Part shown: piece by piece, positions 1 to 33,514 of the stretch
Position numbering within the stretch: the stretch's first letter is position 1
Layout of the letters: each line of letters opens with the position of its first letter
From: Cyanophora paradoxa CCMP329
Taxonomy: Eukaryota > Plantae > Glaucophyta
NCBI GenBank assembly: GCA_004431415.1
Contig: QPMI01000672.1
Coordinates: 1-64,000, forward strand
Direction of reading: 5' to 3'
DNA length: 64,000 nucleotides
Program-made: the position numbers and the translations under genes
The notes under the pieces: generated by a model
Databases searched by the model: none
What the model was told of the DNA's origin: nothing
What the model saw: only the letters and a program-made list of their open reading frames with translations

Positions 1-2
1 CT

Positions 3-3300: not shown

Positions 3301-3573
3301 GCAGTCGCTCAAGTCACATTTGCGAATTCACTTGCGTCTCAATTGCCGCTTTGCGCTTTTGCTTTGCGAGCGTTTTGCACTTCTTATTTTGTCATGCGGT
3401 TTTCGAGGGTTCTCTTTCGGGATTTTCTCTTTCGGGGGGGGGGGGGGGGGGGGGGGGCTGATCACGATTCGCTGAATTCCAGTTCGACATTGGCGGTGTG
3501 GGTGAAACTTGCCGGCTGCATATGTCTGCTTATTGACTTGCATATGCCGCTTATTGACTTGCATATGCCGCAG

Positions 3574-4966
3574 ATGGAGGCTCCGAAAGCCAAGCGAAGC
3601 AAGACGGAAGACCAGCGAATCCGTCGCGATGTGCTAGCTGCTCTCAAGCTCAAAGACGAGTTGGAATTCGACTCTCAGAAAGTGCACAACGAGGCGAATG
3701 GGGAGCGGAATCAGCGGGTCCTCGTCAAACTCCCCGTTTCAGCCGCCCGCCGCCAGCCGGGATCTCCGGGATCTGGATCTGGAAAAGTGCACGAGGCCGA
3801 GCCCCCTTCTGGTCAGAAGACGCTATTCGTACTGAACTCCGGCTGGAGTACAAACTCGAGGAACGGACCCTGGCGGCGTTCTCGTTACGCACTGGAGAAG
3901 ACCGAGAAAGGCTTCCTTGTTCCCGCTTTCCTCGGATTCCGCACGAAGCCAGGCCATTTCATGTTTGGGGGTCGTGCGCCATTCAATTGTTGTCTTTCTC
4001 GCAATCAAGCATTATGTTTATGATTTTCCAATGCAGGTACGCGCCATGCTTGCAAGAATACGATCTTCAAGAGTATCCATCCTACGGAAGTGTATACTCC
4101 TCTGAAAGACACAGTCGCGGATCAGGATATGATGTGATTGCGCATCAATAATGCAAAAATCCGCGACATGTTTGACGTCTTTTGTTCAGGGCATACTGGC
4201 TTGGAGTTTCGCCGACGCCACCGACTTTGGTCGCTGATAAGCTCGGATTCGGCTCAAGCAACAAGCTGCACGATTTGCTGGCAAAGAGTCGCAGTGACGT
4301 GGTAAGAAGTATATGAAAATACTGGACGGCTAGCACTTTGACTCATGATTCCGTAGATTCATGTGCCTGGTGACTGGGTCATTGAGCAATGGGTGTACCG
4401 CGACGCCTTTGAAGCCGAAAAGGAAGAGCGGAAGGACAAGAGGCAGCTGGAGGAGGAAGAGATGAGAGCAAAGTCGAACGCAGCCAGCCAAGACAGTCAG
4501 AATTCGAATGATGAGGACATGAAGAAGCTTCAGGCTGAGCAGGCCGAGCAGCAATCTCGGCATCGACAGAACGAGGCTGATGAGGCAGAGATCGCGCGCC
4601 GATTTGAAGCCGATTCTTCGCTCCATCGCGTTCAGAATCCCGAGTTCGAAAGAGCGACTGCCGATTACGGTCGCTTCTTCAAGGACGCTAATGTCCGTCT
4701 CCTGGTTCGTTCATTCTTTAACTCTCCTCTCCTTGTGTCGCTGCTGCAACATCATGATGCAGGAGGAGACTGCAATGGACGTGACACTTCAGCAAGGATC
4801 TTCATCACGTTCAGAGCCACTGGACCTGCTGGTCACACTTGCCACAGGGAAATCAGCTGCAGCAGTGGCATCAAATATTCCTGATGGGGATGAGTCCGGC
4901 TTGTCGTCGGACGAGGAGGAGATGACTACGCACCGCAGCCAGGTTGGTGGAGATGAGCTTGATTAA
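3574..4966 (+). CDS. Putative spliced accessory ORF of the transposon (TnpA-like position), charged and coiled-coil
   Basis: MEAPKAKRSKTEDQRIRR... and EAEKEERKDKRQLEEEEMR... segments separated by intron-like stretches. No recognisable domain. Confidence 0.35.
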
Positions 4967-5203
4967 TGACCTGCCAGGCTGGTGCGCATCCCGCCAGTCC
5001 GCATGCGCACGCAAATAAGAAGAATTCCGTCCCAGCTGCAGATTTCAGGAATACGAAGCATTCATCAAACCGATTAGCTAGCTCTAGGATAGAGCTCGCG
5101 CGCAGTATCGCTTGAAGATGGGCTGCTATAGATAGCTTTTACAGAAAAAATAAAAAAAAGCAAAAAAAACGTAAAAAAGTGAACCGCTGCACCGAAACCA
5201 ACA

Positions 5204-5400
5204 TTACCTCGGCGAGTTTACCCCGACGTCTTTACCTCGCCAACTTTACCTCGGCGAGTTTACACCGACGTCTTTACCCCGCTTTTCACAACTTTACCAC
5301 CCTGACTTTACCCCGGCGACTTTACCCTGGTGACTTTACAGTGGTGTAACGCAAACAGCACAACTTTACCACACCCTAAGTTTACCATATGGTAAACTTA
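5204..5400. repeat. Subterminal TTTACC repeats ending in a perfect 24-bp palindrome
   Basis: About 12 TTTAC(C) motifs. TAAGTTTACCAT-ATGGTAAACTTA at 5377-5400. Confidence 0.85.
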
Positions 5401-5417
5401 ATTTCTGGCTCCCAGTG

Positions 5418-8400
5418 GCGGCCGCCCCGCGGCTCCACCCCGCGCCCCGCCCCGGCGCACCGAACAGCGATGCTGCCGTCGACGAGTTCGTGCTCATCGT
5501 GCTTGACGCGGCGCCCGGTGTGAAGTCAGGCGCCGCGCCCGTCACGGTCCCCGCGTACGCCGTCAGATTGGCCCCGCTGCACGTGATCGTGTACGACGCG
5601 CCCATCTCGGGGAGCCCCAAGACGGTCACGCTGGCGCTCGTCGCCCCAGCCGTGATCGTGCCGCTCGCCAGGGAGCCCGTCCGCGTCACGCCGGCCCCGG
5701 AGCAGCTCACCTCCAGCGGCCCGTACGTCGGCGCCACGTTGTCCCCGCTGTACCCCACCGCCGAGAGCGCCCAGCTCACGGGCACCGTCACCGACGTCGT
5801 CGACTGCGGGATCGGCGTCCCCACCGTCACGTTCTCCACCGTCTTTGCGTGCACTGCGCCCCACGCCCCGCGTCAGCCTCCATCCCAGGACCCGCAAAAA
5901 AGTGTCTGCCGTGGCTCCACGCACCCGTCGAGTACGCCGTGGCGCTCGACGCCACCCCCAGGTACGAGTAGTACACCGTCGCCGCGCAGCTCGTCACGTG
6001 CGACTGCACCTGCCACCTCCCGGAGCCCGCGCTGACCAGCACCGTGGCCGAGCCCGTCCCCGTCTCCGAGGCCACTGTCGCGTTCGAGGCCGAGTCCGCC
6101 ACGCCGTTGCTCGAGCAGCTCACGGTCACGTTCGCGTACGCCGGCTCCGTGCCCGACGCCCCCGTCGTATTCCAGGACACCGCCGCCAAAACAGCGTCCG
6201 CCCGCTCGACGAGACCGTCACCGATGGCGGCCCACCGACTTGGCTGCGAGCAGGCGTCAGGGCCCAGCGCGACGCGGCCGCCCGCGGCTCCACCCCGCGC
6301 CCCGCCCCGCGCACCGAACAGCGATGCTGCCGTCGACGAGTTCGTGCTCATCGTGCTTGACGCGGCGCCCGGTGTGAAGTCAGGCGCCGCGCCCGTCACG
6401 GTCCCCGCGTACGCCGTCAGATTGGCCCGCTGCACGTGATCGTGTACGACGCGCCCATCTCGGGGAGCCCCAAGACGGTCACGTTGGCGCTCGTCGCCCC
6501 AGCCGTGATCGTGCCGCTCGCCAGGGAGCCCGTCCGCGTCACGCCGGCCCCGGAGCAGCTCACCTCCAGCGGCCCGTACGTCGGCGCCACGTTGTCCCCG
6601 CTGTACCCACCGCCGAGAGCGCCCAGCTCACGGGCACCGTCACCGACGTCGTCGACTGCGGGATCGGCGTCCCCACCGTCACGTTCTCCACCGTCTTTGC
6701 GTGCACTGCGCCCACGCCCCGCGTCAGCCTCCATCCCAGGACCCGCAAAAAAGTGTCTGCCGTGGCCCCACGCACCCGTCGAGTACGCCGTGGCGCTCGA
6801 CGCCACCCCCAGGTACGAGTAGTACACCGTCGCCGCGCAGCTCGTCACGTGCGACTGCACCTGCCACCTCCCGGAGCCCGCGCTGACCAGCACCGTGGCC
6901 GAGCCCGTCCCCGTCTCCGAGGCCACTGTCGCGTTCGAGGCCGAGTCCGCCACGCCGTTGCTCGAGCAGCTCACGGTCACGTTCGCGTACGCCGGCTCCG
7001 TGCCCGACGCCCCCGTCGTATTCCAGGACACCGCCGCCAAAACAGCGTCCGCCCCGCTCGACGAGACCGTCACCGACGGCGGCCCCACCGACTTGGCTGC
7101 GAGCAGGCGTCAGGGCCCAGCGCGACGCGGCCGCCCCGCGGCTCCACCCCGCGCCCCGCCCCGCGCACCGAACAGCGATGCTGCCGTCGAAGAGTTCGTG
7201 CTCATCGTGCTTGACGCGGCGCCCGGTGTGAAGTCAGGCGCCGCGCCCGTCACGGTCCCCGCGTACGCCGTCAGATTGGCCCCGCTGCACGTGATCGTGT
7301 ACGACGCGCCCATCTCGGGGAGCCCCAAGACGGTCACGTTGGCGCTCGTCGCCCCAGCCGTGATCGTGCCGCTCGCCAGGGAGCCCGTCCGCGTCACGCC
7401 GGCCCCGGAGCAGCTCACCTCCAGCGGCCCGTACGTCGGCGCCACGTTGTCCCCGCTGTACCCCACCGCCGAGAGCGCCCAGCTCACGGGCACCGTCACC
7501 GACGTCGTCGACTGCGGGATCGGCGTCCCCACCGTCACGTTCTCCACCGTCTTTGCGTGCACTGCGCCCCACGCCCCGCGTCAGCCTCCATCCCAGGACC
7601 CGCAAAAAAGTGTCTGCCGTGGCCCCACGCACCCGTCGAGTACGCCGTGGCGCTCGACGCCACCCCCAGGTACGAGTAGTACACCGTCGCCGCGCAGCTC
7701 GTCACGTGCGACTGCACCTGCCACCTCCCGGAGCCCGCGCTGACCAGCACCGTGGCCGAGCCCGTCCCGTCTCCGAGGCCACTGTCGCGTTCGAGGCCGA
7801 GTCCGCCACGCCGTTGCTCGAGCAGCTCACGGTCACGTTCGCGTACGCCGGCTCCGTGCCCGACGCCCCCGTCGTATTCCAGGACACCGCCGCCAAAACA
7901 GCGTCCGCCCCGCTCGACGAGACCGTCACCGACGGCGGCCCCACCGACTTGGCTGCGAGCAGGCGTCAGGGCCCAGCGCGACGCGGCCGCCCCGCGGCTC
8001 CACCCCGCGCCCCGCCCCCGCGCACCGAACAGCGATGCTGCCGTCGACGAGTTCGTGCTCATCGTGCTTGACGCGGCGCCCGGTGTGAAGTCAGGCGCCG
8101 CGCCCGTCACGGTCCCCGCGTACGCCGTCAGATTGGCCCCGCTGCACGTGATCGTGTACGACGCGCCCATCTCGGGGAGCCCCAAGACGGTCACGTTGGC
8201 GCTCGTCGCCCCAGCCGTGATCGTGCCGCTCGCCAGGGAGCCCGTCCGCGTCACGCCGGCCCGGAGCAGCTCACCTCCAGCGGCCCGTACGTCGGCGCCA
8301 CGTTGTCCCCGCTGTACCCCACCGCCGAGAGCGCCCAGCTCACGGGCACCGTCACCGACGTCGTCGACTGCGGGATCGGCGTCCCCACCGTCACGTTCTC

Positions 8401-11400
8401 CACCGTCTTTGCGTGCACTGCGCCCCACGCCCCGCGTCAGCCTCCATCCAGGACCCGCAAAAAAGTGTCTGCCGTGGCCCCACGCACCCGTCGAGTACGC
8501 CGTGGCGCTCGACGCCACCCCCAGGTACGAGTAGTACACCGTCGCCGCGCAGCTCGTCACGTGCGACTGCACCTGCCACCTCCCGGAGCCCGCGCTGACC
8601 AGCACCGTGGCCGAGCCCGTCCCCGTCTCCGAGGCCACTGTCGTGTTCGAGGCCGAGTCCGCCACGCCGTTGCTCGAGCAGCTCACGGTCACGTTCGCGT
8701 ACGCCGGCTCCGTGCCCGACGCCCCCGTCGTATTCCAGGACACCGCCGCCAAAACAGCGTCCGCCCCGCTCGACGAGACCGTCACCGACGGCGGCCCCAC
8801 CGACTTGGCTGCGAGCAGGCGTCAGGGCCCAGCGCGACGCGGCCGCCCCGCGGCTCCACCCCGCGCCCCGCCCCCGCGCACCGAACAGCGATGCTGCCGT
8901 CGACGAGTTCGTGCTCATCGTGCTTGACGCGGCGCCCGGTGTGAAGTCAGGCGCCGCGCCCGTCACGGTCCCCGCGTACGCCGTCAGATTGGCCCCGCTG
9001 CACGTGATCGTGTACGACGCGCCCATCTCGGGGAGCCCCAAGACGGTCACGCTGGCGCTCGTCGCCCCAGCCGTGATCGTGCCGCTCGCCAGGGAGCCCG
9101 TCCGCGTCACGCCGGCCCCGGAGCAGCTCACCTCCAGCGGCCCGTACGTCGGCGCCACGTTGTCCCCGCTGTACCCCACCGCCGAGAGCGCCCAGCTCAC
9201 GGGCACCGTCACCGACGTCGTCGACTGCGGGATCGGCGTCCCCACCGTCACGTTCTCCACCGTCTTTGCGTGCACTGCGCCCCACGCCCCGCGTCAGCCT
9301 CCATCCAGGACCCGCAAAAAAGTGTCTGCCGTGGCCCCACGCACCCGTCGAGTACGCCGTGGCGCTCGACGCCACCCCAGGTACGAGTAGTACACCGTCG
9401 CCGCGCAGCTCGTCACGTGCGACTGCACCTGCCACCTCCCGGAGCCCGCGCTGACCAGCACCGTGGCCGAGCCCGTCCCCGTCTCCGAGGCCACTGTCGC
9501 GTTCGAGGCCGAGTCCGCCACGCCGTTGCTCGAGCAGCTCACGGTCACGTTCGCGTACGCCGGCTCCGTGCCCGACGCCCCCGTCGTATTCCAGGACACC
9601 GCCGCCAAAACAGCGTCCGCCCCGCTCGACGAGACCGTCACCGACGGCGGCCCCACCGACTTGGCTGCGAGCAGGCGTCAGGGCCCAGCGCGACGCGGCC
9701 GCCCCGCGGCTCCACCCCGCGCCCCGCCCCGCGCACCGAACAGCGATGCTGCCGTCGACGAGTTCGTGCTCATCGTGCTTGACGCGGCGCCCGGTGTGAA
9801 GTCAGGCGCCGCGCCCGTCACGGTCCCCGCGTACGCCGTCAGATTGGCCCCGCTGCACGTGATCGTGTACGACGCGCCCATCTCGGGGAGCCCCAAGACG
9901 GTCACGTTGGCGCTCGTCGCCCCAGCCGTGATCGTGCCGCTCGCCAGGGAGCCCGTCCGCGTCACGCCGGCCCCGGAGCAGCTCACCTCCAGCGGCCCGT
10001 ACGTCGGCGCCACGTTGTCCCCGCTGTACCCACCGCCGAGAGCGCCCAGCTCACGGGCACCGTCACCGACGTCGTCGACTGCGGGATCGGCGTCCCACCG
10101 TCACGTTCTCCACCGTCTTTGCGTGCACTGCGCCCCACGCCCCGCGTCAGCCTCCATCCCAGGACCGCAAAAAAGTGTCTGCCGTGGCCCCACGCACCCG
10201 TCGAGTACGCCGTGGCGCTCGACGCCACCCCCAGGTACGAGTAGTACACCGTCGCCGCGCAGCTCGTCACGTGCGACTGCACCTGCCACCTCCCGGAGCC
10301 CGCGCTGACCAGCACCGTGGCCGAGCCCGTCCCCGTCTCCGAGGCCACTGTCGCGTTCGAGGCCGAGTCCGCCACGCCGTTGCTCGAGCAGCTCACGGTC
10401 ACGTTCGCGTACGCCGGCTCCGTGCCCGAAGCCCCGTCGTATTCCAGGACACCGCCGCCAAAACAGCGTCCGCCCCGCTCGACGAGACCGTCACCGACGG
10501 CGGCCCCACCGACTTGGCTGCGAGCAGGCGTCAGGGCCCAGCGCGACGCGGCCGCCCCGCGGCTCCACCCCGCGCCCCGCCCCGCGCACCGAACAGCGAT
10601 GCTGCCGTCGACGAGTTCGTGCTCATCGTGCTTGACGCGGCGCCCGGTGTGAAGTCAGGCGCCGCGCCCGTCACGGTCCCCGCGTACGCCGTCAGATTGG
10701 CCCCGCTGCACGTGATCGTGTACGACGCGCCCATCTCGGGGAGCCCCAAGACGGTCACGTTGGCGCTCGTCGCCCCAGCCGTGATCGTGCCGCTCGCCAG
10801 GGAGCCCGTCCGCGTCACGCCGGCCCCGGAGCAGCTCACCTCCAGCGGCCCGTACGTCGGCGCCACGTTGTCCCCGCTGTACCCCACCGCCGAGAGCGCC
10901 CAGCTCACGGGCACCGTCACCGACGTCGTCGACTGCGGGATCGGCGTCCCCACCGTCACGTTCTCCACCGTCTTTGCGTGCACTGCGCCCCACGCCCCGC
11001 GTCAGCCTCCATCCAGGACCCGCAAAAAAGTGTCTGCCGTGGCCCCACGCACCCGTCGAGTACGCCGTGGCGCTCGACGCCACCCCCAGGTACGAGTAGT
11101 ACACCGTCGCCGCGCAGCTCGTCACGTGCGACTGCACCTGCCACCTCCCGGAGCCCGCGCTGACCAGCACCGTGGCCGAGCCCGTCCCCGTCTCCGAGGC
11201 CACTGTCGCGTTCGAGGCCGAGTCCGCCACGCCGTTGCTCGAGCAGCTCACGGTCACGTTCGCGTACGCCGGCTCCGTGCCCGACGCCCCCGTCGTATTC
11301 CAGGACACCGCCGCCAAAACAGCGCAAAAAAGTGGCAGTACATCTGCGATCAGGCGCGGGGCGCAGTCGCGCTGATAGAACGCAAGAAGCTCACCGCGAA

Positions 11401-14400
11401 CGAGGCCTGCTACCTTGTCGAGGCCGTAGTGCAGGCCCGCATCTCGTACGGCCTGAAGCTCATGACCCTGAGCGAGAGTCAGTGCCAGGAACTCGATCGT
11501 ATTTGGATGAGGGTCGTCAAGCACCACGGGAACCTCGCCGCCTCGACGACGAATTACGCAATCTGGAGCCACGGGGGGTACAGCCTCAAACGAACAGCCC
11601 ACCTGCAAGCGGAGGCGCAAATCACAGAGGCTCAGATCCGGCTCTGCGCGCCCGAGGGCTCGCTGCTGGCTCGGGGGGTACGGCACCGGGTGCGCGCACT
11701 GCAGGAGAAGCTTGGGGTGCCTCTGCTCCCGACCGAGTTCCTAAACGCGCCCATCTCCAGCGAACTCGCCCGCGGGAACTCCCTGGCGGCGATCATGCCG
11801 CAAATGCAGCGCCGTAAGTACCGGCTGATGTCGAATCACGCGCGCTATGCGGCGTTCCGCACCTTGCCCGGGGCGGAGCCTTGGCCTGACCCGGAGCGCC
11901 TCGACCGGCGCTACGTCGTGGCAATGCACATCCAAGATCCGTCTTCAGCGTCGCGGCCCTGCCCTGTACGGGGCGGGCGTGACGACCATGGACGCGGTGA
12001 CGGCAGCGGACGGCGAGACCCTGCGAACCTGGCAGGACCTGTACATGGGCGCGCCCAAGGGGACGCTGCAGAAGAGCGAGCCTGCGTGGTGGCGTGAGGT
12101 AGCGAACGCGCTCGCGGTTGATGGGAAGCAGCTGCGGCACCCGATGCGGCGGGCAGGAGAGCGCGCGTCAGCCATGGCCTCGCTCCCTGGCGGGCCCGGA
12201 AGGTGAAGTGGGCAAAGGACGCGTTCGTAGCCGTATTTGAGGCGGAGCAACTGCACGATGAATCTGCCGAGCCCCACGTGGGGCGAGTCGTTACGTTCAA
12301 ATCCGAGACGGGCAGCATATTAGCGTCGGAGTACCTGCTGGAGCACTGGGTGCCGGTGCCGAAGGGCGCGGACCCCGACGCGGAGAAAGAGGGACTCTAC
12401 TGCCGGTGCGACGGTCACTGCCGGCACCCCGAAATAGAGGGCGGACGAGCACGTACACGGCGGTGCAGGGGACAGGGAAGCAGTACTGGCACCATGACGA
12501 CCGGTGCACGCGCAATGCTCCATCGCGCTGCCCCGAAATGAGTCAGTGCGACGGCTCGTGGACGCACGGGAAGGGCTGGTGGAGGAGGAGGATACCCTCC
12601 TCGCCTTGGAAGGCGAACCGACGGAGGAGACGCCGGCGGTAGCGGCGGGTCAGGAGACGAAGTCGAAGCGCGGGCGCAAGCAGGTCGCCCTGCGACCGAC
12701 CTTGGAGTACTACGACCCGGGCCTGCGCACGCAAGACGACGAGAAACGCAGGGCGCTGCTTCTCCAGGCCCGCGTGAAAGCCGTACAGGATGGTGACGAG
12801 CGCTTCCTCCGCGAACAGCTGAGCCCGGAGGCCGAGGCTGAGCTGCAGGCCGCGCTGGAAGTGGCTGCGGCGGCGACGCCGGGCGCCGAGCCGCGGGACG
12901 AGGCACAACCTGTGTCAGATTCAGCAGAGCAGAGCGAACTCTACTACGCGGCGGAGCGCCGCGCCACTGGGACTCCCGGGCGGCGCAGGAAGGGTCACCC
13001 TCACCGTTTACTGGCAGCACATGCTGGCAAATTGGAGCAGATCGAAGAGGCGGAACTCGCGAAGCTCGGCCGTCGCCCGGGAAACTCGAGCAGTGGATAT
13101 GGACGGACGGGAGCCTGAAGAAGGGTCAAACGGAAGGGGCGCACGCGGGCCTCGGCGTCGTGAGCCCGGCTGAGTTCCCGGACGGGACCGTGGCGAACCA
13201 CCCGGAATGGGCAGGCACGTACGTTGGCAGGCTGCGCGGGCTTCAAGAGAACAACAAGGCTGAGCTCCAGGCTGCGATCGTCGCCGACGTGCTCGCGGCG
13301 CAGGGGTGCGCCTGCACACGGACAGTCAGAACGTCTGCACGTGGTTCGATAAGTTCGTGCTGAATGCGCACGATATGCACATGCGAGACTACATCCGGAA
13401 CACGTGCAGCGCTGAGCTGTACGCGTGGTCCAAGTTCCGCGCCCTGGTGATGGGACGGGATCGGCAGCGGCCGGCTGCGGTTATCAAGGTCAAGGCGCAC
13501 AGCGACGAGGATATGCACGAGCTAAACGACGCCGCCGACAGAGCGGCCGATCAAGGCGCGCACCTGGAACAGGAGGAACTGGACGAGAACATCTTCCTGC
13601 CGCCCGAGTTCAGCATGCCGGCAGTGCTGACGATCGAGGACCGACCGGGATAGTCAGGCGAGTCGAAGGCGACCCTCGCGGCACGCCGCTGTGCTTCACG
13701 CGCACCACACGCACTTCGCGTGGGCGAACCAGCTCAAGGCCGGGGAGTGGCTACGGCTGCCAGTGGATCACGGCGCAGTATACGATCAGATGGCTATGGG
13801 GCCCCGCCGAGTCGGAGTGAGCCGAGAGAGCAACTGCTTCCGGGGTACGCACATGAAACTCGTTTTGGGTACGGTGGCGACGGCCCTCGTCCGCAAGCGA
13901 GACGCGCCCGAGCTCTACAGCGAAGTGAACCCGGCAGGACTCTGTGCGCTCTGCAGCACACGGGAAATCGATGGCGACGGCCGGCCCCAGCTTGTGACTG
14001 GGCCCGAGGAGACGCTGGAGCACGTCCTCACCTGCCCCAGCGCGGTGGCGACGGAGGCGCGCACCGCTGCGGAAGCACGCATCGCAGCGACGGTCAGCGA
14101 GGCCCTCGAAGGCGCGCAGAAGCGGTCAGTGCCACACGCGCTCTCCAGCTCCCTGAAGGTCACGAGAGTAAACGACCCGACGCTCACGGCAGCTGAACGG
14201 CAGGCGCAGATGTGCGTGCTACGGGGGCTGCCCCGGCGGGCCTCACCGATATGATTCGCGAGACCGTCACGGACGCCAAGAAAGCTGCCCAGGTCGTGCG
14301 CAAGCTGACGACGGCCATAGGCGAGCAGGCCCATAAAACGTGGGCCGCCAGATGCCAGGCGTACGCGGAGTGGGAGAAGGCGTGCGGGATCACGAAGGTC

Positions 14401-17400
14401 ATGAAAGAACGTCGCGCCAAGGCGAAGCGCACTGAGGCGCGCGGGCGCGAGGCCGACGCGCCGCCTGACGATACGGCTGGCAACGCTCGCAGGAAGCGCG
14501 CGGATCCGGAGCCCCGGCAGCGGGAACGCTGCAGGGAGTGCGGTGCCCTCGAGTCCCGCCACCAAGGCGGGGAAACCCTAGCCCTCTCACACCTGAGCTG
14601 CCCGCCAGACGACTACGGCTGGGTCCGGGCTTCAGCGGCCATGCAAGTATACGACCATACGAACAGGTATGCTTGGGGCGTGGGCACACAGAGGGCGCGC
14701 CCGCGCTAGAGGGAGACACTGGGGGATTGCGGTCTGGGGCGGGCCGGAGGACGCAACACCAACAAATGGAGGCGGCGGAGGCGACGGCAGGAGGCGGCCA
14801 GTAGCCCAATCTACTGGGCTGGCGAGGAGCCTGGCACACGGCGCGGCGAGGCCCTTGGGCAGCGCTGGCGGCGGACATACCATGATTGGGAGTCTTTTGT
14901 AGAGATAGGACCTCGTAGCCGGGAGTTTAGGTTGGTTTAGAAATCGATACAGCTAGCTTCCACATCATTAGTATTAGTTAGAAACCTCCTTAGCTAGATA
15001 TCTAGACACGAAACCTTCAAACCTTTCGTTCATTTTGTACTTTCTAAAGCACAGCATACGACGGTCCTCGATAGTATCTAGTCGGAGAGATTTATTGGGC
15101 GATGTGAAACTCATTGTAGTTGTGTTGTGTGCTAATGCAAGAGATTTTAGTCGGCCCGTACGTCGGCGCCACGTTGTCCCCGCTGTACCCCACCGCCGAG
15201 AGCGCCCAGCTCACGGGCACCGTCACCGACGTCGTCGACTGCGGGATCGGCGTCCCCACCGTCACGTTCTCCACCGTCTTTGCGTGCACTGCGCCCCACG
15301 CCCCGCGTCAGCCTCCATCCCAGGACCCGCAAAAAAGTGTCTGCCGTGGCCCCACGCACCCGTCGAGTACGCCGTGGCGCTCGACGCCACCCCCAGGTAC
15401 GAGTAGTACACCGTCGCCGCGCAGCTCGTCACGTGCGACTGCACCTGCCACCTCCCGGAGCCCGCGCTGACCAGCACCGTGGCCGAGCCCGTCCCCGTCT
15501 CCGAGGCCACTGTCGCGTTCGAGGCCGAGTCCGCCACGCCGTTGCTCGAGCAGCTCACGGTCACGTTCGCGTACGCCGGCTCCGTGCCCGACGCCCCCGT
15601 CGTATTCCAGGACACCGCCGCCAAAACAGCGTCCGCCCCGCTCGACGAGACCGTCACCGACGGCGGCCCCACCGACTTGGCTGCGAGCAGGCGTCAGGGC
15701 CCAGCGCGACGCGGCCGCCCCGCGGCTCCACCCCGCGCCCCGCCCCCGCGCACCGAACAGCGATGCTGCCGTCGACGAGTTCGTGCTCATCGTGCTTGAC
15801 GCGGCGCCCGGTGTGAAGTCAGGCGCCGCGCCCGTCACGGTCCCCGCGTACGCCGTCAGATTGGCCCCGCTGCACGTGATCGTGTACGACGCGCCCATCT
15901 CGGGGAGCCCCAAGACGGTCACGTTGGCGCTCGTCGCCCCAGCCGTGATCGTGCCGCTCGCCAGGGAGCCCGTCCGCGTCACGCCGGCCCCGGAGCAGCT
16001 CACCTCCAGCGGCCCGTACGTCGGCGCCACGGTGTCCCCGCTGTACCCCACCGCCGAGAGCGCCCAGCTCACGGGCACCGTCACCGACGTCGTCGACTGC
16101 GGGATCGGCGTCCCCACCGTCACGTTCTCCACCGTCTTTGCGTGCACTGCGCCCCACGCCCCGCGTCAGCCTCCATCCCAGGACCCGCAAAAAAGTGTCT
16201 GCCGTGGCCCCACGCACCCGTCGAGTACGCCGTGGCGCTCGACGCCACCCCCAGGTACGAGTAGTACACCGTCGCCGCGCAGCTCGTCACGTGCGACTGC
16301 ACCTGCCACCTCCCGGAGCCCGCGCTGACCAGCACCGTGGCCGAGCCCGTCCCCGTCTCCGAGGCCACTGTCGCGTTCGAGGCCGAGTCCGCCACGCCGT
16401 TGCTCGAGCAGCTCACGGTCACGTTCGCGTACGCCGGCTCCGTGCCCGACGCCCCCGTCGTATTCCAGGACACCGCCGCCAAAACAGCGTCCGCCCCGCT
16501 CGACGAGACCGTCACCGACGGCGGCCCCACCGACTTGGCTGCGAGCAGGCGTCAGGGCCCAGCGCGACGCGGCCGCCCCGCGGCTCCACCCGCGCCCCGC
16601 CCCGCGCACCGAACAGCGATGCTGCCGTCGACGAGTTCGTGCTCATCGTGCTTGACGCGGCGCCCGGTGTGAAGTCAGGCGCCGCGCCCGTCACGGTCCC
16701 CGCGTACGCCGTCAGATTGGCCCCGCTGCACGTGATCGTGTACGACGCGCCCATCTCGGGGAGCCCCAAGACGGTCACGTTGGCGCTCGTCGCCCCAGCC
16801 GTGATCGTGCCGCTCGCCAGGGAGCCCGTCCGCGTCACGCCGGCCCGGAGCAGCTCACCTCCAGCGGCCCGTACGTCGGCGCCACGTTGTCCCCGCTGTA
16901 CCCCACCGCCGAGAGCGCCCAGCTCACGGGCACCGTCACCGACGTCGTCGACTGCGGGATCGGCGTCCCCACCGTCACGTTCTCCACCGTCTTTGCGTGC
17001 ACTGCGCCCCACGCCCCGCGTCAGCCTCCATCCCAGGACCCGCAAAAAGTGTCTGCCGTGGCCCCACGCACCCGTCGAGTACGCCGTGGCGCTCGACGCC
17101 ACCCCCAGGTACGAGTAGTACACCGTCGCCGCGCAGCTCGTCACGTGCGACTGCACCTGCCACCTCCCGGAGCCCGCGCTGACCAGCACCGTGGCCGAGC
17201 CCGTCCCCGTCTCCGAGGCCACTGTCGCGTTCGAGGCCGAGTCCGCCACGCCGTTGCTCGAGCAGCTCACGGTCACGTTCGCGTACGCCGGCTCCGTGCC
17301 CGACGCCCCCGTCGTATTCCAGGACACCGCCGCCAAAACAGCGTCCGCCCCGCTCGACGAGACCGTCACCGACGGCGGCCCACCGACTTGGCTGCGAGCA

Positions 17401-20400
17401 GGCGTCAGGGCCCAGCGCGACGCGGCCGCCCCGCGGCTCCACCCCGCGCCCCGCCCCGCGCACCGAACAGCGATGCTGCCGTCGACGAGTTCGTGCTCAT
17501 CGTGCTTGACGCGGCGCCCGGTGTGAAGTCAGGCGCCGCGCCCGTCACGGTCCCCGCGTACGCCGTCAGATTGGCCCCGCTGCACGTGATCGTGTACGAC
17601 GCGCCCATCTCGGGGAGCCCCAAGACGGTCACGTTGGCGCTCGTCGCCCCAGCCGTGATCGTGCCGCTCGCCAGGGAGCCCGTCCGCGTCACGCCGGCCC
17701 CGGAGCAGCTCACCTCCAGCGGCCCGTACGTCGGCGCCACGTTGTCCCCGCTGTACCCCACCGCCGAGAGCGCCCAGCTCACGGGCACCGTCACCGACGT
17801 CGTCGACTGCGGGATCGGCGTCCCCACCGTCACGTTCTCCACCGTCTTTGCGTGCACTGCGCCCCACGCCCCGCGTCAGCCTCCATCCCAGGACCCGCAA
17901 AAAGTGTCTGCCGTGGCCCCACGCACCCGTCGAGTACGCCGTGGCGCTCGACGCCACCCCCAGGTACGAGTAGTACACCGTCGCCGCGCAGCTCGTCACG
18001 TGCGACTGCACCTGCCACCTCCCGGAGCCCGCGCTGACCAGCACCGTGGCCGAGCCCGTCCCCGTCTCCGAGGCCACTGTCGCGTTCGAGGCCGAGTCCG
18101 CCACGCCGTTGCTCGAGCAGCTCACGGTCACGTTCGCGTACGCCGGCTCCGTGCCCGACGCCCCGTCGTATTCCAGGACACCGCCGCCAAAACAGCGTCC
18201 GCCCCGCTCGACGAGACCGTCACCGACGGCGGCCCCACCGACTTGGCTGCGAGCAGGCGTCAGGGCCCAGCGCGACGCGGCCGCCCCGCGGCTCCACCCC
18301 GCGCCCCGCCCCGCGCACCGAACAGCGATGCTGCCGTCGACGAGTTCGTGCTCATCGTGCTTGACGCGGCGCCCGGTGTGAAGTCAGGCGCCGCGCCCGT
18401 CACGGTCCCCGCGTACGCCGTCAGATTGGCCCCGCTGCACGTGATCGTGTACGACGCGCCCATCTCGGGGAGCCCCAAGACGGTCACGCTGGCGCTCGTC
18501 GCCCCAGCCGTGATCGTGCCGCTCGCCAGGGAGCCCGTCCGCGTCACGCCGGCCCCGGAGCAGCTCACCTCCAGCGGCCCGTACGTCGGCGCCACGTTGT
18601 CCCCGCTGTACCCCACCGCCGAGAGCGCCCAGCTCACGGGCACCGTCACCGACGTCGTCGACTGCGGGATCGGCGTCCCCACCGTCACGTTCTCCACCGT
18701 CTTTGCGTGCACTGCGCCCCACGCCCCGCGTCAGCCTCCATCCCAGGACCCGCAAAAAAGTGTCTGCCGTGGCCCCACGCACCCGTCGAGTACGCCGTGG
18801 CGCTCGACGCCACCCCCAGGTACGAGTAGTACACCGTCGCCGCGCAGCTCGTCACGTGCGACTGCACCTGCCACCTCCCGGAGCCCGCGCTGACCAGCAC
18901 CGTGGCCGAGCCCGTCCCCGTCTCCGAGGCCACTGTCGCGTTCGAGGCCGAGTCCGCCACGCCGTTGCTCGAGCAGCTCACGGTCACGTTCGCGTACGCC
19001 GGCTCCGTGCCCGACGCCCCCGTCGTATTCCAGGACACCGCCGCCAAAACAGCGTCCGCCCCGCTCGACGAGACCGTCACCGACGGCGGCCCCACCGACT
19101 TGGCTGCGAGCAGGCGTCAGGGCCCAGCGCGACGCGGCCGCCCCGCGGCTCCACCCCGCGCCCCGCCCCGCGCACCGAACAGCGATGCTGCCGTCGACGA
19201 GTTCGTGCTCATCGTGCTTGACGCGGCGCCCGGTGTGAAGTCAGGCGCCGCGCCCGTCACGGTCCCCGCGTACGCCGTCAGATTGGCCCCGCTGCACGTG
19301 ATCGTGTACGACGCGCCCATCTCGGGAGCCCCAAGACGGTCACGTTGGCGCTCGTCGCCCCAGCCGTGATCGTGCCGCTCGCCAGGGAGCCCGTCCGCGT
19401 CACGCCGGCCCCGGAGCAGCTCACCTCCAGCGGCCCGTACGTCGGCGCCACGTTGTCCCCGCTGTACCCCACCGCCGAGAGCGCCCAGCTCACGGGCACC
19501 GTCACCGACGTCGTCGACTGCGGATCGGCGTCCCCACCGTCACGTTCTCCACCGTCTTTGCGTGCACTGCGCCCCACGCCCCGCGTCAGCCTCCATCCCA
19601 GGACCCGCAAAAAAGTGTCTGCCGTGGCCCCACGCACCCGTCGAGTACGCCGTGGCGCTCGACGCCACCCCCAGGTACGAGTAGTACACCGTCGCCGCGC
19701 AGCTCGTCACGTGCGACTGCACCTGCCACCTCCCGGAGCCCGCGCTGACCAGCACCGTGGCCGAGCCCGTCCCCGTCTCCGAGGCCACTGTCGCGTTCGA
19801 GGCCGAGTCCGCCACGCCGTTGCTCGAGCAGCTCACGGTCACGTTCGCGTACGCCGGCTCCGTGCCCGACGCCCCCGTCGTATTCCAGGACACCGCCGCC
19901 AAAACAGCGTCCGCCCGCTCGACGAGACCGTCACCGACGGCGGCCCCACCGACTTGCTGCGAGCAGGCGTCAGGGCCCAGCGCGACGCGGCCGCCCCGCG
20001 GCTCCACCCCGCGCCCCGCCCCGCGCACCGAACAGCGATGCTGCCGTCGACGAGTTCGTGCTCATCGTGCTTGACGCGGCGCCCGGTGTGAAGTCAGGCG
20101 CCGCGCCCGTCACGGTCCCCGCGTACGCCGTCAGATTGGCCCCGCTGCACGTGATCGTGTACGACGCGCCCATCTCGGGGAGCCCCAAGACGGTCACGTT
20201 GGCGCTCGTCGCCCCAGCCGTGATCGTGCCGCTCGCCAGGGAGCCCGTCCGCGTCACGCCGGCCCCGGAGCAGCTCACCTCCAGCGGCCCGTACGTCGGC
20301 GCCACGTTGTCCCCGCTGTACCCCACCGCCGAGAGCGCCCAGCTCACGGGCACCGTCACCGACGTCGTCGACTGCGGGATCGGCGTCCCCACCGTCACGT

Positions 20401-23400
20401 TCTCCACCGTCTTTGCGTGCACTGCGCCCCACGCCCCGCGTCAGCCTCCATCCCAGGACCCGCAAAAAAGTGTCTGCCGTGGCCCCACGCACCCGTCGAG
20501 TACGCCGTGGCGCTCGACGCCACCCCAGGTACGAGTAGTACACCGTCGCCGCGCAGCTCGTCACGTGCGACTGCACCTGCCACCTCCCGGAGCCCGCGCT
20601 GACCACACCGTGGCCGAGCCCGTCCCCGTCTCCGAGGCCACTGTCGCGTTCGAGGCCGAGCCGCCACGCCGTTGCTCGAGCAGCTCACGGTCACGTTCGC
20701 GTACGCCGGCTCCGTGCCCGACGCCCCGTCGTATTCCAGGACACCGCCGCCAAAACAGCGTCCGCCCGCTCGACGAGACCGTCACCGACGGCGGCCCCAC
20801 CGACTTGGCTGCGAGCAGGCGTCAGGGCCCAGCGCGACGCGGCCGCCCCGCGGCTCCACCCCGCGCCCCGCCCCCGCGCACCGAACAGCGATGCTGCCGT
20901 CGACGAGTTCGTGCTCATCGTGCTTGACGCGGCGCCCGGTGTGAAGTCAGGCGCCGTGCCCGTCACGGTCCCCGCGTACGCCGTCAGATTGGCCCCGCTG
21001 CACGTGATCGTGTACGACGCGCCCATCTCGGGGAGCCCCAAGACGGTCACGTTGGCGCTCGTCGCCCCAGCCGTGATCGTGCCGCTCGCCAGGGAGCCCG
21101 TCCGCGTCACGCCGGCCCCGGAGCAGCTCACCTCCAGCGGCCCGTACGTCGGCGCCACGTTGTCCCCGCTGTACCCCACCGCCGAGAGCGCCCAGCTCAC
21201 GGGCACCGTCACCGACGTCGTCGACTGCGGGATCGGCGTCCCCACCGTCACGTTCTCCACCGTCTTTGCGTGCACTGCGCCCCACGCCCCGCGTCAGCCT
21301 CCATCCCAGGACCCGCAAAAAAGTGTCTGCCGTGGCCCCACGCACCCGTCGAGTACGCCGTGGCGCTCGACGCCACCCCCAGGTACGAGTAGTACACCGT
21401 CGCCGCGCAGCTCGTCACGTGCGACTGCACCTGCCACCTCCCGGAGCCCGCGCTGACCAGCACCGTGGCCGAGCCCGTCCCCGTCTCCGAGGCCACTGTC
21501 GCGTTCGAGGCCGAGTCCGCCACGCCGTTGCTCGAGCAGCTCACGGTCACGTTCGCGTACGCCGGCTCCGTGCCCGACGCCCCCGTCGTATTCCAGGACA
21601 CCGCCGCCAAAACAGCGTCCGCCCCGCTCGACGAGACCGTCACCGACGGCGGCCCCACCGACTTGGCTGCGAGCAGGCGTCAGGGCCCAGCGCGACGCGG
21701 CCGCCCCGCGGCTCCACCCCGCGCCCCGCCCCCGCGCACCGAACAGCGATGCTGCCGTCGACGAGTTCGTGCTCATCGTGCTTGACGCGGCGCCCGGTGT
21801 GAAGTCAGGCGCCGTGCCCGTCACGGTCCCCGCGTACGCCGTCAGATTGGCCCCGCTGCACGTGATCGTGTACGACGCGCCCATCTCGGGGAGCCCCAAG
21901 ACGGTCACGTTGGCGCTCGTCGCCCCAGCCGTGATCGTGCCGCTCGCCAGGGAGCCCGTCCGCGTCACGCCGGCCCCGGAGCAGCTCACCTCCAGCGGCC
22001 CGTACGTCGGCGCCACGTTGTCCCCGCTGTACCCCACCGCCGAGAGCGCCCAGCTCACGGGCACCGTCACCGACGTCGTCGACTGCGGGATCGGCGTCCC
22101 CACCGTCACGTTCTCCACCGTCTTTGCGTGCACTGCGCCCCACGCCCCGCGTCAGCCTCCATCCCAGGACCCGCAAAAAAGTGTCTGCCGTGGCCCCACG
22201 CACCCGTCGAGTACGCCGTGGCGCTCGACGCCACCCCCAGGTACGAGTAGTACACCGTCGCCGCGCAGCTCGTCACGTGCGACTGCACCTGCCACCTCCC
22301 GGAGCCCGCGCTGACCAGCACCGTGGCCGAGCCCGTCCCCGTCTCCGAGGCCACTGTCGCGTTCGAGGCCGAGTCCGCCACGCCGTTGCTCGAGCAGCTC
22401 ACGGTCACGTTCGCGTACGCCGGCTCCGTGCCCGACGCCCCCGTCGTATTCCAGGACACCGCCGCCAAAACAGCGTCCGCCCCGCTCGACGAGACCGTCA
22501 CCGACGGCGGCCCCACCGACTTGGCTGCGAGCAGGCGTCAGGGCCCAGCGCGACGCGGCCGCCCCGCGGCTCCACCCCGCGCCCCGCCCCCGCGCACCGA
22601 ACAGCGATGCTGCCGTCGACGAGTTCGTGCTCATCGTGCTTGACGCGGCGCCCGGTGTGAAGTCAGGCGCCGCGCCCGTCACGGTCCCCGCGTACGCCGT
22701 CAGATTGGCCCCGCTGCACGTGATCGTGTACGACGCGCCCATCTCGGGGAGCCCAAGACGGTCACGTTGGCGCTCGTCGCCCCAGCCGTGATCGTGCCGC
22801 TCGCCAGGGAGCCCGTCCGCGTCACGCCGGCCCCGGAGCAGCTCACCTCCAGCGGCCCGTACGTCGGCGCCACGTTGTCCCGCTGTACCCCACCGCCGAG
22901 AGCGCCCAGCTCACGGGCACCGTCACCGACGTCGTCGACTGCGGGATCGGCGTCCCCACCGTCACGTTCTCCACCGTCTTTGCGTGCACTGCGCCCCACG
23001 CCCCGCGTCAGCCTCCATCCCAGGACCCGCAAAAAAGTGTCTGCCGTGGCCCCACGCACCCGTCGAGTACGCCGTGGCGCTCGACGCCACCCCCAGGTAC
23101 GAGTAGTACACCGTCGCCGCGCAGCTCGTCACGTGCGACTGCACCTGCCACCTCCCGGAGCCCGCGCTGACCAACACCGTGGCCGAGCCCGTCCCCGTCT
23201 CCGAGGCCACTGTCGCGTTCGAGGCCGAGCCCGCCACGCCGTTGCTCGAGCAGCTCACGGTCACGTTCGCGTACGCCGGCTCCGTGCCCGACGCCCCCGT
23301 CGTATTCCAGGACACCGCCGCCAAAACAGCGTCCGCCCCGCTCGACGAGACCGTCACCGACGGCGGCCCCACCGACTTGGCTGCGAGTAGGCGTCAGGGC

Positions 23401-24237
23401 CCAGCGCGACGCGGCCGCCCCGCGGCTCCACCCCGCGCCCCGCCCCCGCGCACCGAACAGCGATGCTGCCGTCGACGAGTTCGTGCTCATCGTGCTTGAC
23501 GCGGCGCCCGGTGTGAAGTCAGGCGCCGCGCCCGTCACGGTCCCCGCGTACGCCGTCAGATTGGCCCCGCTGCACGTGATCGTGTACGACGCGCCCATCT
23601 CGGGGAGCCCCAAGACGGTCACGTTGGCGCTCGTCGCCCCAGCCGTGATCGTGCCGCTCGCCAGGGAGCCCGTCCGCGTCACGCCGGCCCCGGAGCAGCT
23701 CACCTCCAGCGGCCCGTACGTCAGCGCCACACTGCTTGAGTTGTATCCAACCGTCGAGAGCGCCCAGCTCACGGGCACCGTCACCGACGTCGTCGACTGC
23801 GGGATCGGCGTCCCCACCGTCATGCCCGCCACAGTTCTTATATTCACTGTTTTCGGCACCCCGCGTCAGCCCGCGCCCCGCGCTCCACGCCCATTCCCGA
23901 CTGCGGCCCCACGCACCCGTCGAGTACGCCGTGGCGCTCGACGCCACCCCCAGGTACGAGTAGTACACCGTCGCCGCGCAGCTCGTCACGTGCGACTGCA
24001 CCTGCCACCTCCCGGAGCCCGCGCTGACCAGCACCATGGCCGAGCCCGTCCCCGTCTCCGAGGCCACTGTTGCATTCGAGGCCGAGCCCGCCACGCCGTT
24101 GCTCGAGCAGCTCACGGTCACGTTCGCGTACGCCGGCTCCGTGCCCGACGCCCCCGTCGTATTCCAGGACACCGCCGCCAAAACAGCGTCCGCCCCGCTC
24201 AACGAGACCGTCACCAACGGCGTCCCCACTGACTTAG
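5418..24237. repeat. Tandem array of ~858-bp units, about 17 full copies plus partials
   Basis: Example unit: exon A 21346-21666, intron 21275-21345, exon B 20882-21274, intron 20809-20881. Copies are nearly identical, including the introns. Confidence 0.98.
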
Positions 24238-25735
24238 CTGCGGGCGTGGATCAGCTTGGTGTGCAGTTTCAGACACTGCGACGAGGCGAGCTGATACGGA
24301 CCGTAGAGAGACGCCGCTGTAGCCATTCCCGTCGAGGTGATGGCTGCCCTGCTCTCCGTCACAACATTAACAGGCCAGCCTGTTGCAGTCCCCGTCGAGA
24401 AAACAAGATACGCCGCTGAGCACGAGATGTTGTAGGGAGAGCTCATCTCGGGTAGCCCAGTCACCGTCAGAGATGCGCTGCTTGCGCCGTCCAGTGGAAC
24501 GGCGCTCGCTGTCCTCGTGACGCCACTTCCCGAGCACGTCACGTTCAAAGTGCTGTTTGTTGGAGAAAGCGCATATCCCGCAGACAGCGTCCAAGTGAAA
24601 GGAACGATAATCGAAGTGGTCGATGCAGGGGTTATTGTACCGAAAACCAGGCCCGACGCAGTCTTCAATGGCACTGCAGCAGCGGTCAGGCAAGCAATCG
24701 ATCACAGTGCGCGCCAAAGAAAGGGCGCACGTGTCGTCGAGCCTGCAGAGCTGGTGATTGAGCCATTGTACGAGTACGTAACTGTGACCCTGCAGCTGAC
24801 AGGGTAAGACGAAGTGTCCCAGAATGCTGATGATACGTCGATTTGTGCGGTTTGAGTTGCGTTGTTGGCAAGCACGGTCGAATTGGTTGCCGAAACGGCG
24901 TTGCTAGTACAAGTGACGGATTGGCTCACGTTACTGTATGCCTCCGTCTGGCTTGCGGACTGCGTGAGAGTCACTGATCCAACTGCTATGCTTGTGCTGG
25001 TCGTCGTAGCAATCGTTGGCGTCATGATTGCGGTGATTGTTCTCGCTGCGAACGAGTGGCGCATCAGGAAGAGAACAGACAGATTTTTTTTGAATGTATT
25101 GATTTTTTCAAAGCAAATCGAACGAGCTCGAGGCCACCTGCAGGAAGTGATACGATGATTGAATTCACGCAGCTCGTGCATGTAGAAATAGAAGTGGTGC
25201 TGCATCCAGCACATATCATAGGGTTTTTGCAACCGGTGTCGGAGCATGTGGCAGTGTAGTCGAAAGAGCAGGAGATGTTGAAGGAAATTGGCGCCTCCGG
25301 AAAGGGACCGAATGTGGAGCTCAAATCATACGTGTAGAGCCTGGACCCTGGGGGAGGTGCAGTCCCAGTGCTGGGTGGGTACGTCTGCATCACCGTCCAG
25401 TCGGCGCCGTACGGATGCGTGCAGGTGCCTGATATGGAGGTCATGTTTATGATTGTGTTGGCCACGTCTGTCCACGAAAGCTGCCATTGAATCGACGCTG
25501 TCGTCGTGGTAACGGTGCTGCCAGAGTGCGCAAACGAGACCGTTGTTGTTCCAGGTGCCCCTCCAGGTGGTCCACCTCCAACGCCCCCAGGTGGTCCTTG
25601 GGATGTTGCAACGTCCACTCGAAGCAGCAGAAGAAGGCAGATCACGGCACTGAGCGGTGTAGGCTGCCGGCGTCGGAAGGTGGGACGCCCTTGGCCTTGT
25701 GGACGTGAACTCTGCGTCGAGCTATGCGTCTGCAA
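5418..25735 (-). CDS. Giant multi-exon secreted/surface protein with tandem Ig/FN3-like beta-sandwich modules; interrupted by a LINE, 3' end outside the window
   Basis: Exon 1 (25735-25138) has a hydrophobic signal-like segment LSAVICLLLLLRVDVATS. Exon 2 is 25045-24731 and exon 3 is 24673-24302. Alternating exons A (107 aa) and B (131 aa) follow, all joined by phase-1 GT-AG introns. Each module has Trp plus two Cys and is S/T/V/A-rich. Confidence 0.8.
11325..15151 (+). mobile_element. 5'-truncated non-LTR retrotransposon with RNase H (RT thumb - RNase H - zinc knuckle)
   Basis: Thumb-like ARISYG...GGYSL; RNase H motifs WIWTDGS, NNKAEL, HTDSQ and KVKAHS..NDAAD; CALC...ETLEHVLTCP. Several frameshifts. 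AT-richer 3' UTR. No short TSD. Confidence 0.88.
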
Positions 25736-26270: not shown

Positions 26271-27553
26271 AGGCAAAGTGGCTCACCCTCTTGCCAAATG
26301 ATGGTGGCAGCCTGGTCCGTTTCTTCCATACATCTGCAGACCATTCTCCATCTGCAGGACAAAGTTTGGGTGTGCACGTCTGCGACAGGCCCGAGCCGCA
26401 CGGCGACCGGTACGCGCACGTGTGCAGGAACAATGACTTGAACGGGCGGCCTCGCGGTCGGGATCCTTGTGCCTTCGTCGCCTACGCCGAGGTTCGCGCG
26501 CCACGTCACGCCTCGGATCTGAGCCCGCGCCGCGGACGCTTGGCATGGGGGCGTCGCCTCCGGCCAGTGGCCGTGGCCCTCGCGCGGGCAGCGTGGGCCT
26601 TGGAGTGGCTCCGGATCGCCGCTCAGCATCTCCCGCAGCCGGCTGCAGTCGGCAGCTGCGAGGCGCAAGGAAGTTGTCAGTGAGCAGTAGCTACGACAAG
26701 AAGGCGAGGCTGGGGCACCAGGACCTCATTGCGGCCGAGACGACTCCGCGGCAGCCGCACGTGGTTGCGCTCCGGCTGCGGAACGTCACCTCCGGCGGAA
26801 CCCTGAGAGGAGGGACAGGCGCAGGCGCACGCTGCGGTCTATAGCTAGGAGCTCCTCGCCGCTTGCATGGTCATGAATTCGATGCAGGCCTTAGCTGCGA
26901 TCTGGCGCGGGGAGGCTCGCGTTAGCTATCATAGTATGAGATCTGCAGACACGCGCGTGCCTCGCCGCCGAGGCCTAGCTATAGAGGCGTGCACGTGCTT
27001 CGGCGTCCGGCGGCTGTATCCAGGTCCCCCGGAGAGCAATCCCTGCTTCAACGCCCGACGGGCGTGTTCTCGTTGTCCGGGGCGCTTGCAACGCGCCGAT
27101 GGCGATGGCGCTACGAGATGGCAGCGGAGTCAACACGAAGGTCGATGTCAGGAGGAGCGCCGCGGCCGCGGATCTGCGTGATGGCGCTCTTCTGAGACTC
27201 CACTGCCTGCGGGCGCGCCGCACGATCACGGTGAGCGACAGGTCGACGCGCCGCACCGACCATCGACCGGACCGGTATCATCGAACGGAAGCGCACCTCA
27301 AGCCTCGCAAACCAGGTGATGTAGCTAAGAACTGCACACCGCTAGCACGCTTTAGCTAACCGCCAACGCCGGCCCCCTAGCTGGCCTGCTAACTAGTACA
27401 GTACTTCTGTGTCGAGGCCGCACCGTGAGCGCGAGCTATTTGGCAGGCTGGATCGTAGGTGCGTCGCGGCGGCCGCTCCCCACATGCACAGCCTGAGAGA
27501 GGCGCGTCGACGGTCGACGTCGACGTCCCTCCGGCGCCTCCGCTGCTTTCTTC

Positions 27554-28286: not shown

Positions 28287-28357
28287 AGGCGGGCGGCGGC
28301 TGCGAAGTGGGCGCCGCGCGCTGGCACCCATGGAGAGAGGTGTGTGATGAATGAAGG

Positions 28358-33489: not shown

Positions 33490-33514
33490 GTTGCGTACGG
33501 CCGGAACGCTCTGC

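Follow-up and report, generated by a model that had tools for sequence, protein, structure and literature searches.

A tandem array of near-identical two-exon units in Cyanophora paradoxa, the candidate body of a very large gene for FN3-like modules

Organization of the locus

We analyzed a stretch of 64,000 nucleotides from the glaucophyte Cyanophora paradoxa CCMP329 (assembly GCA_004431415.1, contig QPMI01000672.1, positions 1 to 64,000; hereafter the window), for which a preliminary description, made from the sequence alone, had proposed a giant surface-protein gene composed of repeated modules between positions 5418 and 25735. Local alignment revealed that the minus strand from 24237 to 5418 consists of 18 tandem two-exon units of 857-858 bp each, together ~19 kb, which are interrupted once by a foreign insertion and are preceded by the exons E1, A0 and B0. 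The elements of the putative gene are, in the direction of reading:

25138..25649, minus strand: exon E1, unique; 170 codons with a hydrophobic start, a Pro/Gly-rich stretch and a Cys-rich tail (9 Cys); ends in phase 1
24731..25045, minus strand: exon A0, a diverged A-type module; 315 nt, phase 1-1, GC content at third codon positions (GC3) 0.59; 47% identical to exon A (E 1e-10)
24302..24673, minus strand: exon B0, a diverged B-type module; 372 nt, phase 1-1, GC3 0.61; 46% identical to exon B (E 3e-26)
15152..24237, minus strand: array part 1 (9.1 kb), units U01-U10 and U11, the last with a complete exon A and an exon B that is cut after 137 nt
21667..22524, minus strand: the reference unit U03, within part 1; exon A 22524-22204 (321 nt), intron 22203-22133 (71 nt), exon B 22132-21740 (393 nt), intron 21739-21667 (73 nt)
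5418..11324, minus strand: array part 2 (5.9 kb), from U12 (exon A 49 nt short at its start) to U18, of whose intron 2 only the first 43 nt are present

The unit was delimited by eye on the minus strand, after which its parts were aligned to the whole region. This yielded 18 copies of exon A and 18 copies of exon B, one of each truncated, and direct repeats at a spacing of 851-858 bp from 5418 to ~24250. All array introns are of the GT-AG type, with an acceptor that ends in GCAG and a donor GTGCGT or GTGCGC in every complete copy. The exon lengths of the reference unit are multiples of three, and at every exon border a codon is split such that one base precedes the intron and two follow it; the exons are therefore symmetric, phase 1-1. 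Units U02 to U18 are 99.65-100% identical over ungapped columns (multiple alignment and pairwise counts), with introns as uniform as the exons, and U01 is 93% identical, its differences lying mostly in intron 1 and in the first 30 nt of exon B. There are only 11 substitution variants among U02-U18, none of them nonsense, and the neighbouring units U03 and U04 have variants in common. Each unit encodes 238 residues that contain seven N-x-S/T sequons (three in exon A, four in exon B) and four Cys (two per exon). The array thus has the features of a multi-exon coding macrosatellite: in-frame units of exons and introns, arranged in tandem and near-identical, introns included. The preliminary description had given about 17 near-identical two-exon units of 858 bp, phase-1 GT-AG introns that are themselves homogenised, seven sequons per unit and two Cys per module, and proved accurate on each of these. 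As a separate observation, an AAC-to-AGC change (Asn to Ser) at unit consensus position 615, one of the few real-looking variants of the array, is common to the non-adjacent units U07, U14 and U18 and removes one exon B sequon.

Two of the three unique modules that had been proposed upstream of the array, A0 and B0, are clear members of the same module family by their identity to exons A and B. The third, E1, matches the module profile with an expectation value (E) of 0.5, which is not significant, and its interpretation as a very diverged module is only suggestive. For E1 we found no homolog by word search and no published model, no Pfam match and no usable match in the ESM Atlas feature search. 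Its first nine residues have a mean Kyte-Doolittle hydropathy of 3.56. The introns of the E1/A0/B0 region measure 57-92 nt. Further upstream, one speculative start of the gene was read by eye:

26287..26351, minus strand: candidate first coding exon; ATG at 26351, 21 codons and 2 nt, donor GTGAGC with its GT at 26286-26285

Its phase 2 is compatible with the acceptor AG at 25651-25650, and to take it as the beginning of the gene is a guess. Just upstream of E1, at 25740-26260, lies a low-complexity tract of 0.5 kb that is C-rich on the minus strand and in which a short unique motif, with the end ...CAGGGTTAG, occurs twice; the tract would lie inside the putative first intron or promoter.

The array differs in composition from the exons that precede it. 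The GC content is 72% in the array and 38-81% in the rest of the window, the genome average being 67.6% (PMC6704402). The array exons have a GC3 of 0.94-0.96 and the array introns 70-86% GC, against a GC3 of 0.58-0.61 for E1, A0 and B0 and 43-61% GC for their introns. The step is sharp and coincides with the edge of the homogenised array (24238-25649 versus 5418-24237). Since exons and introns change in composition alike, a regional cause is indicated and not codon selection; one explanation, which the pattern looks like, would be GC-biased gene conversion in the recombining array.

A module family of Cyanophora

Exons were searched and folded singly, and the multi-exon proteins that we used were published database models only. 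A profile built from exon B and B0 was run with HMMER against 1.84 billion representative proteins and gave 12 matches, all from Cyanophora paradoxa (EukProt EP00741). These comprise fragment models of the array contig and paralogs on tig00020539, tig00020944 and tig00000396, i.e. tig00020539_g10417 (P0011), tig00020944_g16349 (P0018) and tig00000396_g24903; paralogous modules were located on four other contigs. The modules of the paralogs share 23-37% identity with exon B, and identity among the modules overall amounts to 23-46%. In an alignment of 24 modules W27, P41, C50 and C91 are invariant or nearly so, and the common pattern consists of a Trp after a Ser/Thr-rich first strand, P-x-Y before the first Cys, a G-L-P turn and Y-x-I-x-C. 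The conservation of these modules in paralogs, with the Trp, the Pro and the two Cys retained, identifies the minus strand as coding. The profiles of A and of B match the same paralog modules and hhalign joins the two with an E of 1.9e-4 and both Cys in register, from which it follows that A and B are two subtypes of one domain family.

The family could not be connected to any described one. Pfam returned no significant family for exons A, B, A0, B0 and E1, and for the 24 family modules only scattered insignificant matches without fn3 even at E up to 1-10; the family profile retrieved nothing below E 0.9 from the PDB sequences, the ESM Atlas feature search with exon B gave no usable match, and no description of the family was found in the literature that was covered. 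The author of the preliminary description had not recognised it either. As judged by these searches, the module family appears to be restricted to Cyanophora paradoxa.

The paralogs give an impression of the proteins in which such modules occur. P0011 (1,950 residues) contains a near-identical block of four modules (~453 residues) that is repeated several times, and ends with a hydrophobic helix of ~21 residues and a tail of 6 residues. In P0018 (2,491 residues) the modules alternate three times with Kelch repeats, and both P0018 and P0017 have a hydrophobic C-terminal tail. The presence of near-identical higher-order repeats in P0011 and P0018 makes repeated array formation a trait of the whole family, and the family looks like one of large surface proteins. 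The published models of P0011 and P0018 look N-terminally truncated.

Predicted fold of the modules

Exon B was modelled with AlphaFold2 on the basis of the 24-module alignment, with a predicted local distance difference test score (pLDDT) of 74 overall and of 78-90 in the core blocks. A run with two sequences only (pLDDT 51) was uninformative and was discarded. The model has eight strand segments (5-10, 14-17, 20-29, 43-52, 55-61, 72-78, 89-98 and 101-105) and a disordered Ser/Thr-rich tail at 114-130, so that one exon would equal one domain plus linker. A structural search with the model retrieved mostly FN3 domains (NCAM, Ihog, integrin beta4, Robo, gp130 and ROS1), next to the luminal domain of TMEM106B, with Z-scores of 8.0-8.6 and a root-mean-square deviation of ~3 A over ~100 residues. 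The fn3 clusters of the ESM Atlas matched with template modelling scores of 0.52-0.59, and Foldseek listed weak FN3 and Ig-like rows. The check that had been suggested, structure prediction followed by a Foldseek-type search, thus favours the proposed beta-sandwich, and we conclude with moderate confidence that exon B encodes an FN3-like beta-sandwich followed by a linker. The same fold is concluded for exon A, by homology to B. With respect to Pfam family PF00041, the predicted seven-strand beta-sandwich of FN3 topology is present in the exon B model, at moderate strength, and a sequence match is not.

The modules had been described as Ig/FN3-like. The FN3 part agrees with the model and its structural neighbours; the strict Ig part does not, as a classical Ig domain carries a B-F disulfide across its two sheets and the conserved Cys lie on the predicted strands C (C50, in 43-52) and F (C91, in 89-98), which are neighbours in one sheet. 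This suggests a C50-C91 disulfide that would be unlike the Ig bond and that would have the register expected for cross-strand neighbours.

Insertions and neighbouring elements

The two parts of the array are separated by a foreign insertion, and the array is bordered on both sides by sequences that resemble mobile elements:

11325..15151, plus strand, antisense to the gene: foreign insertion of 3,827 bp; breakpoints by alignment, AT-rich 3' end at ~14900-15151
1..5417, strand not assigned: DNA-transposon-like sequence; terminal CACTG..., 14-bp subterminal repeats at 5198-5339, internal 101-bp tandem repeat at 2505-3301
27554..33642, minus strand: retroelement-rich flank upstream of the gene; reverse-transcriptase open reading frame at 29153-30781, minus strand, with an RVT_1 match (E 8e-6)

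Within the insertion a weak RNase H match (E 0.004) was found on the plus strand at 13306-13653, and the open frames on that strand are broken; no further copy of the insertion occurs within the window. It is probably a degenerate retroelement, truncated at its 5' end. The RNase H match was all that Pfam retrieved from the open reading frames of the insertion and the element at 1-5417 together, so that no transposase domain was found in the latter. The transposon-like sequence, which starts with CACTGGGAG and has the 14-bp subterminal repeats, begins where the array breaks off in intron 2 of U18, so that the window does not show the 3' end of the gene. Of the features of a CACTA/EnSpm element, one CACTG end and the subterminal repeats were seen, and a second inverted-repeat end was not found within the window. 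The internal repeat at 2505-3301 has 7.8 copies with 96% matches, and spliced-looking plus-strand open frames at 3286-4966 gave no Pfam match.

The upstream flank contains perfect direct repeats of 292 bp (27554-27845 and 27995-28286) and a repeated segment of 128 bp at 33515-33642. Farther away a perfect 234-bp tandem duplication (49789-50257) was noted at the edge of an AT-rich block (34-50 kb), as well as a tRNA-Ile gene with anticodon TAT on the minus strand at 55917-55989 (Rfam 59.8 bits, and ARAGORN) in surroundings of ~70-75% GC. This single tRNA was all that Rfam returned for the window.

A probable single very large gene

We favour, with some confidence, the interpretation that the array is the body of one very large minus-strand gene of a lineage-specific FN3-like family, a multi-exon coding macrosatellite of the kind known from the kringle IV type 2 (KIV-2) repeats of human LPA. 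The gene would have started from a unique N-terminal exon and one old, now diverged A0/B0 pair, after which a two-exon unit was amplified to 18 copies that unequal crossing-over or gene conversion kept near-identical, down to the introns. Each exon would contribute one FN3-like domain with two conserved Cys and three to four sequons, exon B adding the Ser/Thr-rich linker. Splicing at the GT-AG sites would then yield a protein of ~4,445 residues and ~37 domains, where the sum (170 + 105 + 124 + 17 x 238) is taken over E1, A0, B0 and 17 A+B pairs, the two truncated exons being skipped. An FN3 domain is ~3.5 nm long, and the product would be a glycosylated rod of ~130 nm.

The insertion would be passed over as part of a 4.4-kb intron with its donor after an exon A (at 15359) and its acceptor before an exon B (at 10983). 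Such a splice would remove the retroelement together with both truncated exons, and would keep the frame because all exons are phase 1-1. The insertion, and likewise the transposon that lies inside an intron at 5417, could thus leave the protein unaffected. For one uninterrupted product of more than 4,000 residues, the 23 deletions that fall in exons would, besides this splice, have to be assembly errors. Tuning of the length by unequal crossover or in-frame exon skipping, which had also been proposed, would be compatible with the symmetric exon phases.

The seven sequons and four Cys in every 238 residues speak for passage through the secretory pathway, and together with the transmembrane helix of paralog P0011 they make an extracellular location plausible. 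The protein is probably a surface glycoprotein of ~4,400 residues, for which display on the cell or flagellar surface would be most likely, with an anchorage like that of the paralog with the C-terminal transmembrane helix. Of the extracellular filament or adhesin of more than 4000 residues that had been envisaged, the location is plausible, and the continuous product depends on the two conditions given above. Cyanophora lacks a wall; its plasma membrane has a knobbly surface and its flagella bear hairs of two kinds (PMC6704402). Coat, spacer, adhesin and hair subunit are possible functions.

In the public annotation (BRAKER1/Augustus) the array is split into ~20 small models, tig00021723_g23231 to g23250, which in places read through introns or shift frame. 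Where the frame is clean, these models share the A-to-B and B-to-A junctions given above exactly. The fragmentation is attributed to homopolymer errors (see below), and the ~20 partly garbled models most likely represent one gene. No entry for tig00021723 was found in that part of the genome-paper supplements and literature that was covered.

Interrupted frames and competing explanations

Several observations weigh against a single functional gene. In the assembly, the frame is broken in 14 of the 34 complete exon copies (lengths of 316, 319, 320, 391 or 392 nt). The insertion has taken the place of an intron and of the adjoining parts of its two exons, 256 nt at the end of an exon B and 49 nt at the start of an exon A; the transposon-like end at 5417 cuts the last visible intron; and the locus as a whole is set among transposons. 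Within the window no start codon, 3' end or membrane anchor was found for the array gene. For E1 there is no in-frame ATG, within the exon or upstream in its frame, so that the signal-peptide-like exon of the preliminary description retains its hydrophobic start and loses its start codon. A 3' end was sought by a word search for a counterpart of the C-terminal, transmembrane-bearing region of P0011, which matched only a neighbour of P0011. The portion of the genome-paper supplements and literature that was covered held no expression evidence for the locus. With regard to the fold, a Z-score near 8 is middling for beta-sandwiches, and only exon B was modelled well. The broken copies, the 3.8-kb insertion and the missing ATG of E1 had not been mentioned before.

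The broken frames can be judged from the pattern of the indels. Relative to the unit consensus there are 33, all of them single-base deletions (no insertions) and 23 of them exonic; 31 lie in homopolymer runs of at least 3 bases, mostly G4 or G5, and the same runs are affected in non-adjacent units. The homopolymer deletions number 21 per 84 bases in G runs of at least 3 in the exons and 10 per 37 in the introns, which are about equal rates. The genome was assembled from PacBio RSII reads with Canu 1.0, polished twice with Quiver and corrected with Illumina reads by majority rule, uncovered areas being kept as PacBio sequence (PMC6704402). As short reads cannot be placed uniquely in a tandem array of 72% GC, residual homopolymer under-calls are the error to be expected, and we consider it likely that the frameshifts are an assembly artefact. 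Neutral decay would likewise give exons and introns the same density of indels, which keeps a pseudogene in play: the array would then be a dying gene, recently amplified and now an inactive relic that real frameshifts, the retroelement, the transposon at 5417 and the loss of the first exon have put out of action. The 14 broken copies, the two exons destroyed by the insertion, the transposon end in the last intron, the absence of an ATG in E1, the transposon-rich surroundings, the even indel density and the lack of expression evidence in the material just mentioned all accord with such a relic. Against it stand the combination of 33 single-base deletions, 31 of them in homopolymers, and no insertions with only 11 substitution variants, which is typical of PacBio consensus error and atypical for decay, and the absence of any nonsense substitution; moreover, both insertions would be tolerable as intronic because the exons are phase 1-1. 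We regard a dying gene as rather unlikely, though it is the rival that we take most seriously.

The assembly may also err at a larger scale, in the copy number, the order of the units or the junctions with the insertion and the transposon, such that the locus is collapsed, expanded or chimeric with a second array. The consensus errors in the array and the use of Canu 1.0 on RSII reads make this conceivable, and so does the second contig tig00021616 (g22909), which carries identical units and could represent either a continuation of the array gene or a second locus. Against this, both sub-arrays are flanked by unique sequence, and the substitution variants shared by U03 and U04 look like real structure. 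As the insert size was ~15 kb (PMC6704402) and each sub-array (9.1 kb and 5.9 kb) is shorter than that, the copy number is probably real, and a misassembly of this kind seems improbable to us. That the array is a non-coding GC-rich satellite in which open frames and GT-AG sites arose by chance has very little to recommend it: high GC does produce long open frames on both strands and Pfam finds no match, but the Trp, the Pro and the two Cys are kept at 23-46% identity in A0, B0 and the paralogs on four other contigs, and the alignment gives a confident beta-sandwich. The profile search and the module alignment already contradict a satellite of this sort.

Implications

The single-gene interpretation has a more far-reaching form, which we put forward tentatively and hold to be doubtful as a whole. 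The gene would be live, a length-variable and concertedly evolving macrosatellite of two-exon units whose product, a rod longer than 130 nm, would belong to the surface of the wall-less cell or to the flagellar hairs; its architecture of one phase 1-1 exon per module would have arisen independently in the Archaeplastida, and the step in GC3 from 0.6 to 0.95, which the introns share, would be the trace of GC-biased gene conversion. An arrangement with a phase 1-1 exon for each extracellular module is usually tied to exon shuffling in animals.

The results define an FN3-like module family specific for Cyanophora that has no Pfam entry. The locus offers a compact natural case for the concerted evolution of exon-intron units, for the tolerance of transposons through symmetric phases and for GC enrichment by gene conversion. 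In practical terms it illustrates that homopolymer errors in GC-rich long-read assemblies fragment repeat genes. The biological weight of the locus is modest until expression and localisation are established.

Comparison with known systems

The closest parallel in organization is kringle IV type 2 of human LPA, a multi-exon coding variable number tandem repeat (PMC6314250, PMC4378929). As in LPA, the tandem unit comprises two exons with their introns, the copies are near-identical including the introns, and every unit extends the protein in frame. The Cyanophora unit is much smaller (0.86 kb versus 5.5-5.6 kb), fold and kingdom differ, and it encodes two whole domains, one per exon, whereas in LPA one kringle is split over two exons.

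With regard to the protein, the modules are best compared with the FN3 arrays of animals (NCAM, Robo, integrin beta4, titin). The predicted beta-sandwich of ~100 residues with seven core strands, the Trp on strand B, the G-L-P turn before strand F and the Tyr on strand F are all found in animal FN3 domains, as are the single phase 1-1 exon per domain and the rod-like string of domains. Unlike these, the Cyanophora modules have no Pfam fn3 or PDB sequence match, carry their conserved Cys on the predicted strands C and F, and were found in one glaucophyte only. The paralogs, finally, have the module family in common with the array; P0011 combines its own near-identical four-module block of ~453 residues with a transmembrane helix, and P0018 adds Kelch repeats to the modules.

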